Source: Camelus ferus
Lineage: Eukaryota
Direction: 5' to 3'
Length of the DNA: 64,000 nucleotides
Assembly (NCBI RefSeq): GCF_009834535.1
Contig: NC_045704.1
Coordinates: forward strand, 18,600,001 to 18,664,000
Shown here: positions 279-64,000 of the stretch, piece by piece
Position numbering within the stretch: the first letter of the stretch is position 1
Layout: every line of letters begins with the position of its first letter
Notes under the pieces: model-generated
The model's input: only the letters and a program-made list of their open reading frames with translations
Told to the model about the DNA's origin: nothing
The model's database searches: none
Made by a program: the position numbers and the translations under genes

Positions 279-748
279 TTATAGCAGCGAAATCAACCAA
301 TGGGTTGGGGGAAGGGGAAGGGGGGGACACAGGAAGGTTGAAAATCAAAAGTAAAGGCCAGGCACTAGGTGGTTGGGGGAGAAGCCGAAATGTATGAGGC
401 GCACAGAACGGAAAATAACAGGGAAGGGGTGGCACTGGCCCAGGAAGTGGGGGGTATCTTGGGACAGAGCCCACCCACCCCACAACCCCCAGAACGGATT
501 CACCGGGGCCCTGAGATCCCAGAGTCCTCGCTCTCCCCACACCCACTACCACACGCCCCACCCCGCCCCCCACTCATGGGCCTAAAAGGAAAAGGGTGCG
601 GAGCTGGTCTCTCTGGCAACGACAGAAAGAAGCGAGGTGAGGAGGGTGTGCGTTGGGGTGGTACAGGGCATGGGAGTGGGGGACGGGCTCTCGAGACCCT
701 CTTGGCCACACCCCCAGTGGTTTTGCAGAGGCGGAGGCCCCCACGCAC

Positions 749-7282
<6,534 letters not shown>

Positions 7283-7379
7283 CTTCTGCTCGCAAGAAAA
7301 GACGGCGGCCTCAGCGCGTCCCCAACGTCTGAGGCTTAGTTTCCCCTCCGGTTCCCCAGGAGAAAAGAAAAAAAAAAAA

Positions 7380-7700: not shown

Positions 7701-8547
7701 AGAGTGGCAGAATTGTCTTAAAGTAGAGTGTGGAGTCGACATCTTGAGAGGGTCGAAGATGCGGAAAAAGGGCAAAGTGTTTTAATACCCTGGGACCGGA
7801 TTTTTCCAGCCAGAAACTCGCGCTTGAATTTAGTCCATTTCACTAATCAAATAATTCAGACTTTATCTTACAGCCCCTCTGACACATTGGTAGGAGGTAG
7901 GTACCCCCGTTCTGCAGACGAGAAACCCGAAATTCAGAAAAAGAAACTCTGTAATTGGTAAGTGGTAGACCCAAGACTACTCCCAAGTTTGGGTGACCCT
8001 TGTTTTCCATTGCAATCTCCCTAAATTGATTTAAATGTGAGTTTACTAGTGATTATTTGTCAGAGAGGTGGCAAAGGGAACCAGGCATGAGAGAGAAATA
8101 TGGAAAATTAACCTGATGGAGGAAAATAAATCAGAAGCTTTTAGAACACATAGAACAAAATTTCCCACATAAGCACTGACACACCTGGGTTCAATTTAAA
8201 GAAATTTAATAAGACACCTAGTTAGTTACAGAGGAATGTGGTGCTGTTGGGCTGGCAGCAGGCTCACAACACATCTACCAGGGAATGAGTATACACCACA
8301 GCTTCATCTCTCCATAAGCACACACTCTCCCTTCCACCCCTAAACTGAAGCCAAAACAGATTAGGGAAGGGGTTGGTACTCTATAGAAATGTTTCCTCTT
8401 CTACAAGCTTTGTTCCTTTAAATAGCAGCTGTTTAAAACAGGATTCCCTATAAAAATGCCTCTTGACACTTCTGCAGGAAGGCATTTACTCCAGGAAAGA
8501 GAGGGAACCGTCATTTTCTCTCCACAGAGATCTCTTCTTTGGCATAG

Positions 8548-9489: not shown

Positions 9490-10718
9490 TCATGCTGAGG
9501 GCAGATGCCGAGCACAAGCCCCCTGTAATAACTCCAAGAGTTTGGCCAAAAAGAGAGGGACAGGTCTCTGCAGGTGTCCTTCACAGGGTGGACAGGGGCC
9601 CTGGCCAGTTACCCACAGCCGGGACCCCAGGGCATCCAGTAGGCGCTGTAGCCGGAACACGGCAGTCCCCACGGATGGGCCCTCTTCAAACCCAATCACA
9701 GACAGCTCCAGCCAGAAGCAGCCTAGAGTCTCAGCAGGACACACCTACGGGGACAGAGTGATCTGGTATGTTTGGGCAAGGGACTGATCCCAAATCCTCA
9801 CCCTCACAATTTCTGACTTGTGACCTGGATCATGCCTCTTTGCCTCTCTGGGCATCAGTTTCCCCATCTATAAATTGGAGCTCTTAATAATGCCCACCTT
9901 CAAGTCTGACTCTAGTGCTCCTGTGTGAGTTAGAAAAAGACACTCCTTCCTTAAAACACTTCTAAGTGCTGATTTTGTTAAAACAAGGTACTTTATTGCC
10001 ATCTGCCAGAAGTTGACAAGTATAGATGTGATGGAAATGATGAGAATACTGTCCTTGTAGATGTGGGACCCTTGTGCAGTGTACAACCTTCACATCCATA
10101 CATGACGGTTCTATTTACCTCATAGGGTCAGTGTGAAGAGTCAGTAAGCTAATACACTTAAAGCATTTAGACCAGAACATGGCACAGAGTGAGCACTATT
10201 TCAGTATAGCTGTAATCATCATCACCCTTTGTTGTTATTATGTGCCAGTCACTGTTTGAGGTGTTGGAGACAGCAGTGAATAAATTATATCTGTCAAGGC
10301 TAGGGGTGGGTCAGGGACCAGCCAGTCAGAACATCAGCCCGCCTGCATCCTGTTCTCAACATGTACGTGTTCTAAGCCTAGTGGATTCTTCCTAAACTTT
10401 CAACTTCAGTAAGGAGCTAATGAAATACTCACTGAGAGATCATCTAGGGTGTAGAGAGTGCCATCATTTTTGTTCCCCTTCAATTGTGGGGTAGGGAGGA
10501 AAATCAGACCTTGGAAGGGGAGAGCCTGACCCTTTCTTGAATGTGCCCCCCATCCCACTCCCTCAACTAGCCTGCCCCTGTCTGCTGGCTCTTCCCTCCC
10601 TCCTCACCAGCATCTTCATGATGGCAATGAGGAAGTAGAAACACTCCCGTGGGCAGAGGGGTGGTCCCAGGCTCCCCAAGGGTGGCACCAGCAGGAGGAT
10701 GGTTCGGAGAGGCCACAT
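9490..10718 (-). CDS. IL15L: Interleukin-15-like cytokine, intact 136-aa ORF. Coding exons 10718-10608 (111 nt), 10477-10433 (45 nt), 9744-9490 (255 nt)
   Basis: Spliced protein MWPLRTILLLVPPLGSLGPPLCPRECFYFLIAIMKML|GNKNDGTLYTLDDLS|VCPAETLGCFWLELSVIGFEEGPSVGTAVFRLQRLLDALGSRLWVTGQGPCPPCEGHLQRPVPLFLAKLLELLQGACARHLPSA*. It has a hydrophobic signal peptide, phase-0 introns with GT-AG boundaries, and IL-15 motifs (DGTLYT vs DATLYT; CFWLELSVIGFE vs CFLLELQVISLE; CPPCE vs CKECE; helix-D Gln). The position next to SUPT5H fits the described mammalian IL15L locus. Confidence 0.93.
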
Positions 10719-12499: not shown

Positions 12500-15135
<2,636 letters not shown>

Positions 15136-19468: not shown

Positions 19469-27938
<8,470 letters not shown>

Positions 27939-33572: not shown

Positions 33573-35371
33573 TCACTCAGAAACGGAGATACGATTGAAG
33601 ATGGGGAGTCGCCGGGGGGCTGCAGGTGGCTGGGGTGGCCCAAAAACCCCAGCCTCAAAGACAGGCGAGTCAGATCCCCCCAAGCTGCTGCCGCTGCTGG
33701 CATATTCGTCGGGATCAGATCCCAGGGAGTGTGCAGAGGGGCTCCGTGCCAGGCCGCCCAAGGGCCCCCAGACGCTGCTGGGGGTGGCCCTTCGGCAGGA
33801 AGGGCAACAGGCTGGGGTGGGGTCCCTTCGGGCCACAGGGGTCCCAGGGGCAGCAGAGAAAGCAGAGGGTGAAAGTGGAAGGTCCCCAGGTGGTGGTGGT
33901 GGGGAGCTGGAGGGCGAGAAGGAGCATGAGGACAGAGAAGGACCTGCTAGGCCTGCTGGTGGTGGCGAGGGTCGGCGGCCTGAAGGCAGGCCTGAGAAGC
34001 TGATGCTCTGGCGCAGCACGTGGGGGTGGCCGGAGGCAGCCAGGTCCTCGCTGAGGTTGTGGATGAAGTGGCAGCGCGAGCCGTAGGGGCAGCGGCCCTG
34101 GAGGTAGAACTTGTGGCAGAGTTCCGTCTTGTACTTGGGGTGGCGACTGGCCTGGCGCAGCTCTCCCAGGCCATGGGCAAACTGGCACTTGGCTCCATAG
34201 CGGCAGCGCCCGCTCTCAGAGAAGGTCCGACATAGCTCAGTCTTGTAGCGGGATGAGGTGGTGGGGGTCGCAGTAGGTGAGGTGGGCGACAGCTCAGGGC
34301 CTGGGCGGGGAGCCAGGGGTGCGAAGCCTGGGGGTGGGGGCACCCAGCCGCAGCTGCGACCCTCCACCAGGCTGGTGGAGCGGCCAGGCAGCCGGGCAGC
34401 GACCCCAGCCGGGCTGGAGTCAGATGAACTGAGGCTCCAGGGTCCCGAGGAGGCCCAGACCGGGCTGGACTCAGTCTCTCCATGGTCGGATGGCAGGTCA
34501 GGGCTCAGCGACAGGAGGCTCTGTGGGAACAGGGATCGGTTAAGACACCGAAAATGCAGGGTGACGCCCCGCCCCAGCTGCAGGGCACCCAAGAGCTTGC
34601 CAGTCCGGTTTGTGGGCTCCTGACCTGAGCCCCACCCACCCGCAGACACCCGTGGGTTCCGGATCGCAAGAATCCCGATTTGGAGGTTCTGAGTTTATTC
34701 GCGACTGAACTCTATCCCAAGGGATCCAAGGAACCAAGCTCCCACCGCTGGATCAAGAGGGGCCCTTAAGTCAGGGGACACAACTCTTTTCCAGTTTTAA
34801 GCCTCTGGGTCTCTCGGGATCTGATTCCGCACGTCGGGTTCTCCAGTCTCACAACTGGAGGAGCGGACAAAATTAACCTAGGAGTCCCGATCTCTTCTGT
34901 TTTAGAGTTCCCAGAGTCGTCCTCTGGGTCAGGGAGTGGAGAGACAGAATTCGGTTCCCCTGTACCCTGAGACTCCAGCCCCAGAAACGCCTCCGCGCAA
35001 AACCGCGCCCTCAGCAACTACAGGGGTAAGCCAGGTGTGGGGCCATTTCCGCCTCCAGACAGCCCCAATCTGAGAAAAGTCCTTCAGCTTTCCATCTCCG
35101 AGGGCCGTCCCACTCATGTTTTCGCCGAGACCCGAAAGTCACGGGCTCCATTTTCACCTCCAGAGGATGACACTGGTCTTAAAGGGGAGGCAGGGACCCC
35201 GGGCCAGAATGTCAGGCAGGCGTAAAGGAACTTCAGTTTGAGAAGGAAGCCAGGAGTCCCGGGCGGGAGTTTATGGCGCTAGAGAGCCCTAGTTGGAGAA
35301 GGGAGTCAAGCAAGAGGAACCCGAGGTGCCGGTCAGCGGGGGCTCACCTCGTAGATGGCGGTGAGATCCAT
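33573..35371 (-). CDS. ZFP36: Tristetraprolin (tandem CCCH zinc finger), 323 aa. Exons 35371-35348 and 34520-33573
   Basis: MDLTAIYE|SLLSLSPD...[26 protein letters not shown]...[26 protein letters not shown]...[13 protein letters not shown] (C-terminal NOT1-binding motif). TATA-like GATAAAA at 35463-35457 and a GC box at about 35473. Confidence 0.99.
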
Positions 35372-45701: not shown

Positions 45702-50321
<4,620 letters not shown>

Positions 50322-52391
50322 TAAGCCCAGACCAATAAACAAGTGAAACTCCAACAAATAAGTCTTCTCCAACAGTGAGAAAAACTATACAGTTACTCAA
50401 AGCTGATTCTGCCAGTGGGGCTGGGGATAGAAGGGTGAAATCATGGCAGAGGGGCCAGGGGGCAGGGAGGGGTGGGAGCGGATCAGGGTCCTGCCCATCA
50501 GAGTGAGGCCGCCTGCGTCCTGCACACTCTGCTGTCAGGTGGGGGGAGGGGGGCAGCTCTTGCCTCCCATTGTGTGTGGGGGTGTCCCTCACCACCTCCC
50601 AGTGCCAGGCAGACCCAGCTCACCCTGATGGGTAGTGAACAAGACAGGACTGGCTGGGAGGAGGTGAGGGTCTCTAAGAGGGACACCCTGCTGATACCAA
50701 ACGAGGTGGCCCCTGTCCATCCCACTTCCCCGGGCTAAGAGGAGGACTGGAGAAGCCCTGGGAGTTGGAGGGGAATGAGCAAAGGCACAGAAACATGGAG
50801 GAGCCGGGATGGGGGACTTGCATAGGTTGATGAGTGTGCAAGAGGTACATAAATAAACCTGACACCCCACCCAGCCCGGCACTGGGAGAGGAGGTGGGGA
50901 CCTAGAGCAGGTCCCCAGGGCCACCCTGCCCCCTGGCTTCCTCCCTCTCCTGGGCTTAGAGCTGAGGGAGGTCCAGACCAGGACAGGGGCAAGAAGTTCT
51001 GGGGAATGGGGGGAGAGTGCAGGGAGGGNNNNNNNNNNNNNNNNNNNNNNNNNNNNNNNNNNNNNNNNNNNNNNNNNNNNNNNNNNNNNNNNNNNNNNNN
51101 NNNNNNNNNNNNNNNNNNNNNNNNNNNNNNNNNNNNNNNNNNNNNNNNNNNNNNNNNNNNNNNNNNNNNNNNNNNNNNNNNNNNNNNNNNNNNNNNNNNN
51201 NNNNNNNNNNNNNNNTAAGGGGAAAGTTGGGGGGAGGAATAGGGGACCCTGGCTTCTCCACAGCCTGAACCCCCAAATCCCCTTCCCTCCACCTGGGCCC
51301 TAGCACAACCCCTCAGTAGGAACAGGGATCAGAGGGTCTGTGTAACTCCAGGGCTGGGACGAATCTCTGGGTTATGACATAGTGTTCCACTTAAGTGAGG
51401 TCATGGCAGAATGGCGGGGGATGGTGGGGGGAAGGTTGAAAGAAAAGGGAGTGGGAGTGGGGAAAGAAACCAAAAACCATCCCCTTTCCCTTATTCCTTA
51501 CCCCCAAGTCTTTTCAGCAACCAGACCTGAGAGTGGAGAAGGGTTTGTGTTGGTGGGGGAAGGGGATGTTAAGGCAACAGACTTCCTGACCTCACTGGCT
51601 GCCCTGGCTCCCCGCCTTCAACCTCTGCATCTAGGGAGCCAGGGCTGGGGGTAAGTGGGGAAGGGCTAGGGGGTATGAAGGAGGGGGCTCTGCCCTCTCC
51701 TCTTGTAAAATTTAGGCTCCCCCTGCCACTTTCTTGGCTCAGAGAGAGGCCTGGGGATTCTAAAAATGAGAGGGAATGATTAGAGAGAAAAACCGTTAAG
51801 AACTATATAAATATGTATCTTAAATAGGCCTAAGAAATTAATTGTAGAGAACCTCTGATAAACAGGGCAAGAGGAGGTGAGTGAGAGGAGGGTGGCTCCT
51901 GTCCTGGGGAATGATGGGAATGGGGAAGGAGAAGTGGGTGGGAAGGAGGGGAGGAGAGGGAGAGAGGGAGAGAGAGGGAGGGAGGGAGAGAGATAGGCAG
52001 ACACCCTCCTCCCCTCACCTGCCTTCTCAGCTCCTCTCTGACATTCAGGAGAGCAGGCTATGGACCCTGCTGTTCTCTCCCTAAATGTCAGATGGTTCTG
52101 AGCAGGCCCCACAAGATGGTGGGTCAGTGAGTCTCTAGAGGAGACTGTTTCCTTGGGAGGGGCAGGTGGCCGGTGGTTTGGAGGAGGCAGGGGTGGGATG
52201 GGGCCTGGTGGGGGATGAAAGAGGGAAGGAGAGGCAGGCAGGCTGCCCCCTATCCCTGCTCCCTGGGCCTCAGCAGAGATCCCTCAACGGGCCTGGGAGT
52301 GAGCAAGGCATGTGCCAATGTTAAACAAAAGTTAAAAGGGTGATAGAGTAGAAAAATATTAGAATGTATAGCTGAGCCAGCCCACCCTCTT

Positions 52392-52798
52392 NNNNNNNNN
52401 NNNNNNNNNNNNNNNNNNNNNNNNNNNNNNNNNNNNNNNNNNNNNNNNNNNNNNNNNNNNNNNNNNNNNNNNNNNNNNNNNNNNNNNNNNNNNNNNNNNN
52501 NNNNNNNNNNNNNNNNNNNNNNNNNNNNNNNNNNNNNNNNNNNNNNGAGGCCCAAGAAAAAGCGCTCAGGTAGCCTGTCATCCCAGTCAGGCCCTCCCTG
52601 GAGTCCAGCCTCCCCTAGGGACCCCTCAGGATGACTCTGAGTTGCTCAGTTCAGAGATNNNNNNNNNNNNNNNNNNNNNNNNNNNNNNNNNNNNNNNNNN
52701 NNNNNNNNNNNNNNNNNNNNNNNNNNNNNNNNNNNNNNNNNNNNNNNNNNNNNNNNNNNNNNNNNNNNNNNNNNNNNNNNNNNNNNNNNNNNNNNNNN
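52392..52798. other. Two N-runs (52392-52546, 52659-52798) at the expected positions of the last two SAMD4B coding exons
   Basis: On the minus strand each run is directly preceded by a pyrimidine tract (tttttcttgggcctc; ccattctcctttctcctacc). Confidence 0.65.
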
Positions 52799-63500: not shown

Positions 63501-64000
63501 GGAACACAGGCCTTGAGTTGTCAGATCTTTTGAATTTTCAAGAGAAGCTGAAATCTGGATTTTTAGGGGAAAATTCCCAACTCCTTATATTGGCAAATTT
63601 ATTGAAAAGCGCAACAAAATGAAACCAAAGTTTTGTTGAGTTTGAGCTCAATAAAACATATCTGCAGATCAGAAATAACTCTGGGAATGCCACTTCACAA
63701 CCTCTGCACTGCCTCACAAAACTGAGGCCCAGAGAGGTTATGTGACTTGCTCAGGGCCACAGAGCGAGTAAACAGAGAACCCAGTCTGACCCTTTTCAAG
63801 TAAGCACGGCCTCCCAGGACTCCCACCTCCTNNNNNNNNNNNNNNNNNNNNNNNNNNNNNNNNNNNNNNNNNNNNNNNNNNNNNNNNNNNNNNNNNNNNN
63901 NNNNNNNNNNNNNNNNNNNNNNNNNNNNNNNNNNNNNNNNNNNNNNNNNNNNNNNNNNNNNNNCTGCAGGGCCTCCCCACTCATCTGAGCCCTGGCGCGA
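54577..64000 (-). CDS. SAMD4B: Smaug homolog 2 (SAM-domain RNA-binding protein), partial. Visible coding exons: 64000-63964 (part, continuing into an N-run), 59437-59198, 58654-58545, 58380-58294, 57540-57198, 56451-56366, 55862-55744, 55090-54892, 54700-54577. The last two coding exons are not visible
   Basis: [12 protein letters not shown]...|[17 protein letters not shown]...|[37 protein letters not shown]|[20 protein letters not shown] (SAM domain)...[30 protein letters not shown]; boundaries and phases are consistent. Confidence 0.96.
62970..63230. mobile_element. MIR SINE
   Basis: tgtgaccttgaatacatgacttcacctctttgagtctcggtgctctcatctgtagaatggg...gaggattaaatgagat MIR core. Confidence 0.75.

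Follow-up and report, generated by a model that had tools for sequence, protein, structure and literature searches.

An intact orthologue of the interleukin-15-like gene IL15L between RPS16 and SUPT5H in Camelus ferus

This study concerns a 64,000-nucleotide stretch of Camelus ferus DNA (contig NC_045704.1 of assembly GCF_009834535.1, positions 18,600,001 to 18,664,000; hereafter the window, with position 1 as its first letter), whose minus strand carries, between RPS16 and SUPT5H, the Camelus orthologue of IL15L, the gene for the interleukin-15-like protein IL-15L, which is the third member of the IL-2/IL-15 family and has been lost in humans and mice. Orthology, synteny, an intact open reading frame (ORF) with conserved exon borders and purifying selection are established for this gene, and so are an IL-15-like fold and the retention of the family cysteines and receptor-face residues in its product. 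We consider it probable that the locus is an intact three-exon gene, whose 136-aa precursor has a putative leader of about 18 residues ahead of a short-chain cytokine of the four-helix-bundle type. A first-pass annotation, made from the letters alone, had described an intact but hidden IL15L gene between SUPT5H and RPS16. The identity of 84-93% to named IL-15L proteins and the synteny bear out both the intact gene and its position, but the gene is not hidden, since RefSeq already holds the exact coding sequence as a prediction with these same three exons (XP_064346052.1; XP_010945534.1) and only leaves it unnamed. Similarly, the suggestion that this species keeps a usually unannotated cytokine holds for the intact gene but not for its novelty, since mammalian IL-15L was published in 2014 with intact genes in several Cetartiodactyla and a partial alpaca sequence (Dijkstra et al. 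2014, PMC3894449). Our literature search found no paper linking IL-15L to camels. What the window reveals is an unnamed orthologue of a published gene, correctly identified.

Gene structure and orthology of camel IL15L

The coding sequence is read from three minus-strand segments, 10718-10608, 10477-10433 and 9744-9490, which splice in frame into 411 nt that encode 136 amino acids and a TGA stop. The parts of the gene are as follows.

10608..10718, minus strand: IL15L coding exon 1, 111 nt, residues 1-37, with the ATG at 10718-10716
10478..10607, minus strand: intron 1, 130 nt, with donor GTGAGG and acceptor ...CACAATTGAAG (TTGAAG)
10433..10477, minus strand: coding exon 2, 45 nt, residues 38-52, GNKNDGTLYTLDDLS
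9745..10432, minus strand: intron 2, 688 nt, with donor GTGAGT and acceptor ...CCCCGTAG (CCGTAG)
9490..9744, minus strand: coding exon 3, 255 nt, residues 53-136, with the TGA at 9492-9490

Splicing and translation confirm the earlier description of three minus-strand exons with canonical splice borders and a stop-free protein of 136 residues, and neither the window gene nor its dromedary counterpart contains a stop, a frameshift or a lost splice dinucleotide. Exon 1 encodes the putative leader (MWPLRTILLLVPPLGSLG...), Cys22, Glu25, a camel-specific Cys26 and helix A. The hydrophobic core of the leader lies at residues 3-10, and the N-terminus runs from Arg5 into the hydrophobic TILLLV and then to the small residues S16 and G18, with a predicted local distance difference test (pLDDT) value below 50 at residues 11-19; SignalP-predicted leaders have been reported for other IL-15L proteins (PMC3894449). 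Exon 2 contains Tyr46, which corresponds to Tyr26 of IL-15, as well as L48, which replaces the proline of the LxTP motif, and skipping of this 45-nt exon keeps the reading frame while removing Tyr46. Exon 3 encodes helices B, C and D together with Cys54, Cys61, Cys103, Cys106 and Cys129, and in addition E65, V68, I69 and E72, R83 and R86, E107 and Q126; it is the fused 'exon 3/4' of tetrapods, a term defined for tetrapod IL-15L in PMC3894449. The first-pass annotation had also remarked that the list of ORFs shows only fragments of the gene and misses its middle exon. The fragments are indeed in the list, but the middle exon is missed only at the default length of 60 aa, and at a cut-off of 20 aa it lies inside a 50-aa ORF (10406..10558).

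In protein comparisons, the spliced product is 99% identical (E = 3e-86) to the 136-aa "uncharacterized protein LOC135322174 [Camelus dromedarius]" (XP_064346052.1), which is itself identical to XP_010945534.1 of C. bactrianus. The window differs from this RefSeq entry by I69 instead of T, V81 instead of M and a synonymous change in codon 52, and both I69 and V81 are the residues found in other mammals. The pig "Interleukin 15-like protein" is 93% identical to the camel protein and the rabbit "interleukin 15-like precursor" 84% (E = 1e-67 to 1e-77 for these named proteins), the sheep protein is 85% identical, and the search also reached carnivores, perissodactyls, cetaceans, bats, lemurs and marsupials. 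At the nucleotide level, the dromedary locus (L001) shows the same 1229-bp gene span with the same exons and junctions, and it matches the window with 99.32% identity over 7.2 kb and with 100% identity over exon 1 (L001 3001-3111). The window is accordingly Camelus DNA, but from a different assembly than that of the dromedary.

We compared the gene with eight loci (L001-L008), those of dromedary, hippopotamus, rabbit, sheep, jaguar, white rhinoceros, finless porpoise and a molossid bat; each of them has orthologous exons 111, 45 and 255 nt in length, bordered by GT..AG. Start, stop and frame are conserved across ten IL15L sequences. One of these, L009, is a 942-nt Logan complementary DNA (cDNA) contig (SRR17481189) in which the three exons are joined exactly, with no introns, which shows that at least one other mammal uses these junctions in vivo. 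As a transcript from outside the species studied in 2014, this contig supports the 111/45/255 junctions independently; wherever the two were compared, its translation agrees with the rows given for hedgehog in the 2014 supplement. The camel gene thus resembles the IL-15L genes described in cattle, sheep, pig, horse and rabbit (PMC3894449, PMC7658486) in its position, from PLEKHG2/RPS16 to SUPT5H, in its three coding exons with a 45-nt exon 2 and a fused exon 3/4, and in its precursor of 136 aa. It differs from the genes of sheep and pig, and from that of cattle in the part of Fig. S2 of PMC3894449 that was compared, by the lack of an upstream in-frame ATG.

A chance ORF is ruled out by the match to the RefSeq camel protein (E = 3e-86) and by an exon structure that is kept in nine other sequences. 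An older Camelus dromedarius model of 98 aa, KAB1274286.1 (P0029), runs past the exon-1 donor into intron 1 (…MKMLVRREGRASRQGQA…) and lacks most of exon 2. We regard it as a mis-prediction and not as transcript evidence, and it shows how readily automatic annotation mis-builds this small gene.

Family assignment, predicted fold and receptor-facing residues

With the single camel sequence, Pfam IL15 (PF02372) is the only family match (23.6 bits, E = 6e-5, residues 42-126), with a score that stays below the gathering threshold of 28.5 bits, while several IL15L orthologues carry a precomputed match to the same family. In PDB, phmmer matches the camel protein to human IL-15 at about 2e-4. Further comparisons were based on A1, an alignment of 16 IL15L orthologues that served both for a profile and for AlphaFold2. 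The homology and profile searches suggested with the first-pass annotation support its assignment: besides the pig and rabbit proteins named above, the profile reaches IL-15 structures (E = 5e-9) and IL-21 (4.5e-4). AlphaFold2 places helices at residues 24-40, 55-73, 75-98 and 114-131 (mean pLDDT 64; predicted template modelling score 0.53). When this model is compared with PDB by Foldseek, ranks 1 to 7 are all IL-15 chains (probability 0.99-1.00, template modelling score 0.53-0.69), followed by IL-4, IL-21 and IL-2. The prediction for the protein alone is thus a helical bundle with IL-15 as its seven best structural matches, as anticipated, and the four helices A-D appear to pack as a short-chain bundle of the IL-15 type, with moderate confidence in the model.

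IL-15 (PF02372; PDB 2Z3Q, 2XQB, 4GS7 and 2PSM) shares the fold and is the best structural match, and its two disulfides, its IL-15Ralpha contacts and its helix-D Gln all have counterparts in the camel protein. However, IL-15 proper or another known cytokine is ruled out by an identity to IL-15 of only about 20-28%, a different locus, an extra N-to-C-terminal Cys pair and the sub-threshold Pfam score. The camel protein is related to IL-15 but distinct from it. IL-21 and IL-4 give weaker profile or fold matches than IL-15; both, as is presumed for camel IL-15L, are short-chain cytokines with receptors that include the common gamma chain. They have E/Q in helix A and R in helix C in common with IL-15L, and the N-to-C-terminal disulfide of IL-4 resembles the additional pair of IL-15L (PMC3894449). 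Neither has a sushi-domain alpha chain. The residues of the IL-15Ralpha patch, which IL-15L has, are missing from most IL-21 sequences (PMC3894449).

All motifs quoted in the first-pass annotation are located in the spliced protein, namely DGTLYT at residues 42-47, CFWLELSVIGFEE at 61-73, CPPCE at 103-107 and the helix-D Gln at Q126. HMMER alignments give the following counterparts in IL-15.

camel Y46: IL-15 Y26
camel C54/C103: IL-15 C35/C85
camel C61/C106: IL-15 C42/C88
camel E65: IL-15 E46
camel V68: IL-15 V49
camel I69: IL-15 I50
camel E72: IL-15 E53
camel R83: IL-15 N65
camel E107: IL-15 E89
camel Q126: IL-15 Q108

The published family definition includes two Cys pairs, LxTP, F44, D/E89 and Q108 in the alignment numbering of PMC3894449, in which camel residue numbers are obtained by adding 18. 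Within the family, the N-to-C-terminal Cys pair is specific to IL-15L, Y28, E47 and D/E54 are assigned to IL-15Ralpha, and IL-15L lacks the IL-2Rbeta-binding D11 and N65 while having E/Q7 and R68 in common with IL-4 and IL-21 (PMC3894449). All these positions are present in the camel protein at the offset of 18 except the LxTP proline, where camel reads LYTL (P48L) and human IL-15 reads LYTE; LxTP itself is found in 'many', not all, family members (PMC3894449). Camel IL-15L therefore keeps what other mammalian IL-15L proteins have, that is, the same three Cys pairs, the Y/E/E residues for IL-15Ralpha and the E, R and Q for the type I receptor, with Y46, F62, E65, E72, E107, Q126, E25 and R86 all retained. 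Cys22/129, 54/103 and 61/106 are invariant in the orthologue alignment, and we infer that they pair in this manner in camel.

The receptor face also differs from that of IL-15. Helix A of the camel protein has E25 as its sole acidic residue and no Asp, and there is no N-x-S/T site, both absences as the first-pass annotation had stated. Missing together with this Asp is the helix-C Asn, which completes the motif through which IL-15 binds IL-2Rbeta, Arg83 standing at the position of IL-15 Asn65, whereas Glu25 and Arg86 resemble the corresponding residues of IL-4 and IL-21. Bovine IL-15L likewise lacks an N-glycosylation motif (Yamaguchi et al. 2020, PMC7658486), and neither the missing helix-A Asp nor the missing glycosylation site is peculiar to camel, both having been published for IL-15L in general (PMC3894449, PMC7658486).

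How the camel protein might act can be proposed by analogy with its relatives. Surface display and secretion of bovine IL-15L depend on IL-15Ralpha, and trout IL-15L together with IL-15Ralpha leads to STAT5 phosphorylation and to induction of IL-4/13 genes. Judging by the bovine and trout proteins, camel IL-15L alone would be unstable or poorly secreted. The sushi domain of IL-15Ralpha would bind its acidic patch (Y46, E65, E72 and E107) and take the protein to the surface of the cell or into the medium; the key residues Y46, E65 and E72 are retained in camel. The complex might then signal through a receptor that contains the common gamma chain, contacted by the Q126 face, and cause phosphorylation of STAT5. 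The face formed by helices A and C would be of the IL-4/IL-21 type (E25 and R86) rather than the IL-2Rbeta-binding Asp and Asn of IL-2 and IL-15. In trout, type 2 cytokines are induced as the outcome.

Selective constraint and changes within camelids

Synonymous and non-synonymous changes were counted by the Nei-Gojobori method, with the consensus of eight non-camel sequences as the reference. Against this consensus the window gene shows 16 synonymous and 11 non-synonymous changes, which correspond to a synonymous rate (dS) of 0.165, a non-synonymous rate (dN) of 0.038 and a dN/dS of 0.23 (Fisher p = 2e-4), and pairwise dN/dS between the window and single species ranges from 0.14 to 0.42. Between camel and hippopotamus, 4611 aligned flanking and intronic bases contain 121 gap openings and the 411 coding bases contain none, whereas the flanking rate predicts 10.8 in the coding bases (P(0) = 2e-5). 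Changes confined to the camel pair amount to 6 synonymous and 7 non-synonymous, within the range of other lineages. The low dN/dS, the lack of coding indels and the unexceptional camel-only counts therefore show purifying selection for most of the history of the camel lineage.

Camel IL15L is distinguished from known IL-15L by W5R, G16S, P26C, P48L, P110L and the acceptor of exon 2. Several observations, among them the last four of these changes, weigh against reading this gene as the source of a working cytokine. A splice acceptor with A at -3 belongs to a minority of weaker sites. Such an A (AAG) stands before exon 2 in the window (10478-10480) and in dromedary (L001 3239-3241), whereas the hippopotamus, sheep, porpoise, rhinoceros, jaguar, bat and rabbit loci have CAG or TAG, as do the rows of Fig. 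S2 that were compared, alpaca included (PMC3894449). This acceptor may weaken the inclusion of exon 2, so that an in-frame skip of the exon with Tyr46 is possible. P26C creates a seventh, unpaired cysteine immediately after Glu25, and P48L in LxTP and P110L remove prolines that are conserved in nearly all other mammals; in the part of the alpaca row of Fig. S2 that was compared, P110L is shared, P48L is not, and position 26 is Arg (PMC3894449). Three of these camel oddities, namely the extra Cys26, L48 and the AAG acceptor, were absent from the first-pass annotation. The start context is poor, with C at -3 and T at +4, as has been described for IL-15L of many species as regards a poor context (PMC3894449). 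No AATAAA was found within 1.2 kb past the stop, with ATTAAA present at 8210 and 7786, and exact look-up of the window and RefSeq camel proteins returned no camel IL15L transcript among transcript-sized contigs. To these must be added the sub-threshold Pfam score of the single sequence and the report that bovine IL-15L had no detectable function (Yamaguchi et al. 2020, PMC7658486).

Counts within camelids point in the same direction. A comparison by eye of codons 24-121 of the window with alpaca, as given by the draft vicPac1 assembly in the optically recognized text of the 2014 supplement, yields about 8 non-synonymous and about 4 synonymous changes. Window and dromedary differ by 2 non-synonymous changes and 1 synonymous change (codon 52). 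Position 69, the equivalent of I50 at the IL-15Ralpha interface of IL-15, is I in the window, T in the dromedary and C. bactrianus RefSeq protein and, in the alpaca text that was compared, F, that is, I, T or F across three camelids. These small numbers, which depend in part on an early draft of the alpaca genome, suggest weaker constraint inside camelids. The vicPac1 assembly is one that we take to be of about 2x coverage. Another substitution of the camel protein, R63W, is shared by porpoise and, according to the part of Fig. S2 that was compared, by dolphin and bats, while the alpaca row has Q63 (PMC3894449).

These observations would be expected if the ORF were still intact but the gene were decaying, with constraint recently relaxed in camelids and no working cytokine made at present. 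The AAG acceptor unique to camels, the unpaired Cys26, the loss of two near-invariant prolines, the excess of non-synonymous over synonymous changes within camelids, the variable position 69 and the failure to find a camel transcript all agree with such decay, and repeated independent losses of IL-15L in eutherians are documented (PMC3894449). We nevertheless regard it as unlikely, if worth keeping in mind, because the gene shows no stop, frameshift or splice-dinucleotide loss in either the window or dromedary, the camel lineage as a whole has a dN/dS of 0.23 (p = 2e-4), the 6 synonymous and 7 non-synonymous camel-specific changes lie within the range of lineages with an IL15L regarded as functional, and all receptor-face residues and the six consensus cysteines are retained, while the within-camelid counts that favour decay are tiny and those for alpaca come from an early draft.

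The same changes could instead reflect a lineage-specific retuning of camel IL15L, or even an antagonist-like isoform. With the AAG acceptor, the 45-nt exon could often be skipped, which would remove Tyr46 and the A-B loop in frame, the unpaired Cys26 beside the putative receptor-contact residue Glu25 could permit covalent dimers or an altered use of receptors, and the variable position 69 would belong to the same pattern. We hold this to be improbable. A further explanation, that transcription of the locus now yields chiefly non-coding or hybrid RNA, such as transcripts from upstream exons into SUPT5H, with an ORF incidental to its present role, has in its favour the human IL-15L-pseudogene/SUPT5H hybrid cDNA and the non-coding IL-15L transcripts of other species (PMC3894449), the proximity of SUPT5H, which begins on the same strand about 2.2 kb after the IL15L stop, and the missing AATAAA, but it is very hard to reconcile with purifying selection on the protein, with coding exons free of indels, with a start, stop and frame kept in ten sequences, which a non-coding role would not need, and with the polyadenylated coding IL-15L transcripts known in cattle, rabbit, pig, horse and sheep (PMC3894449).

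With an intact and constrained IL15L as the preferred reading, the meaning of the finding can be stated in modest terms. Of the IL-2/IL-15 family, IL-15L is the member understood least, with a function shown only in trout, in type 2 immunity, and none known in mammals. Each additional mammal with an intact and constrained IL15L strengthens the view that the gene has a retained role in Laurasiatheria, and camel provides a further species for functional study. The practical gain for camel genomics is small, in that LOC135322174 can be named IL15L. The gene opens no new question and leaves knowledge of the family unchanged, the splice-site and cysteine changes being minor leads.

Genomic neighbourhood and other features of the window

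IL-15L has been located between PLEKHG2 and SUPT5H (PMC3894449), and the gene order of the window agrees with this position: RPS16, IL15L and SUPT5H follow one another, with PLEKHG2-like and ZFP36 exons beyond. The neighbouring features are as follows.

12789..15132, plus strand: RPS16, from Pfam Ribosomal_S9 on ORFs 12789-13148 and 14605-15132 and from the dromedary L001 annotation
585..7306, minus strand: 5' part of SUPT5H with acidic exons, mapped from the L001 annotation (Spt5_N, NGN and KOW domains)
24096-24542 and 26498-27274, minus strand: PLEKHG2-like RhoGEF/PH fragments, from sub-threshold Pfam matches
33576-34694, minus strand: ZFP36-like tandem CCCH gene, a 373-aa ORF with two zinc fingers (Pfam zf-CCCH, E = 2e-19)

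RPS16 is divergent from IL15L (head-to-head) and lies about 2 kb upstream of its ATG, whereas SUPT5H lies on the IL15L strand; in dromedary L001 the two neighbours are arranged in this way and at these distances. The upper coordinate of SUPT5H was obtained by transferring the gene start at L001 6436 through the 99.3% alignment. Acidic N-terminal exons of the SUPT5H type are legible in the minus-strand ORFs 2266-2682 and 585-836, and in Pfam the candidate SUPT5H ORFs have no match because these acidic exons are of low complexity. The frame at 33576-34694 fits ZFP36 (tristetraprolin), as the conserved order ZFP36, PLEKHG2, RPS16, IL15L, SUPT5H predicts. Two long overlapping minus-strand ORFs (532 and 354 aa) at 19472-22070 have no Pfam match and, judged by their position, probably belong to the large C-terminal exon or exons of PLEKHG2.

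A CpG-rich stretch at about 12500-13200 coincides with the start of RPS16 (GC content 0.64-0.68, CpG observed/expected 0.7-0.95). The 2 kb between this stretch and the IL15L ATG are CpG-poor, and there is therefore no obvious sharing of the CpG-island promoter of RPS16 by IL15L. Elsewhere in the window, a plus-strand ORF of 326 aa at 49344-50321 has no Pfam match, and five runs of N (148-278, 51029-51215, 52392-52546, 52659-52798 and 63832-63963; 745 bases in total) represent assembly gaps or masked stretches, none of them close to IL15L.

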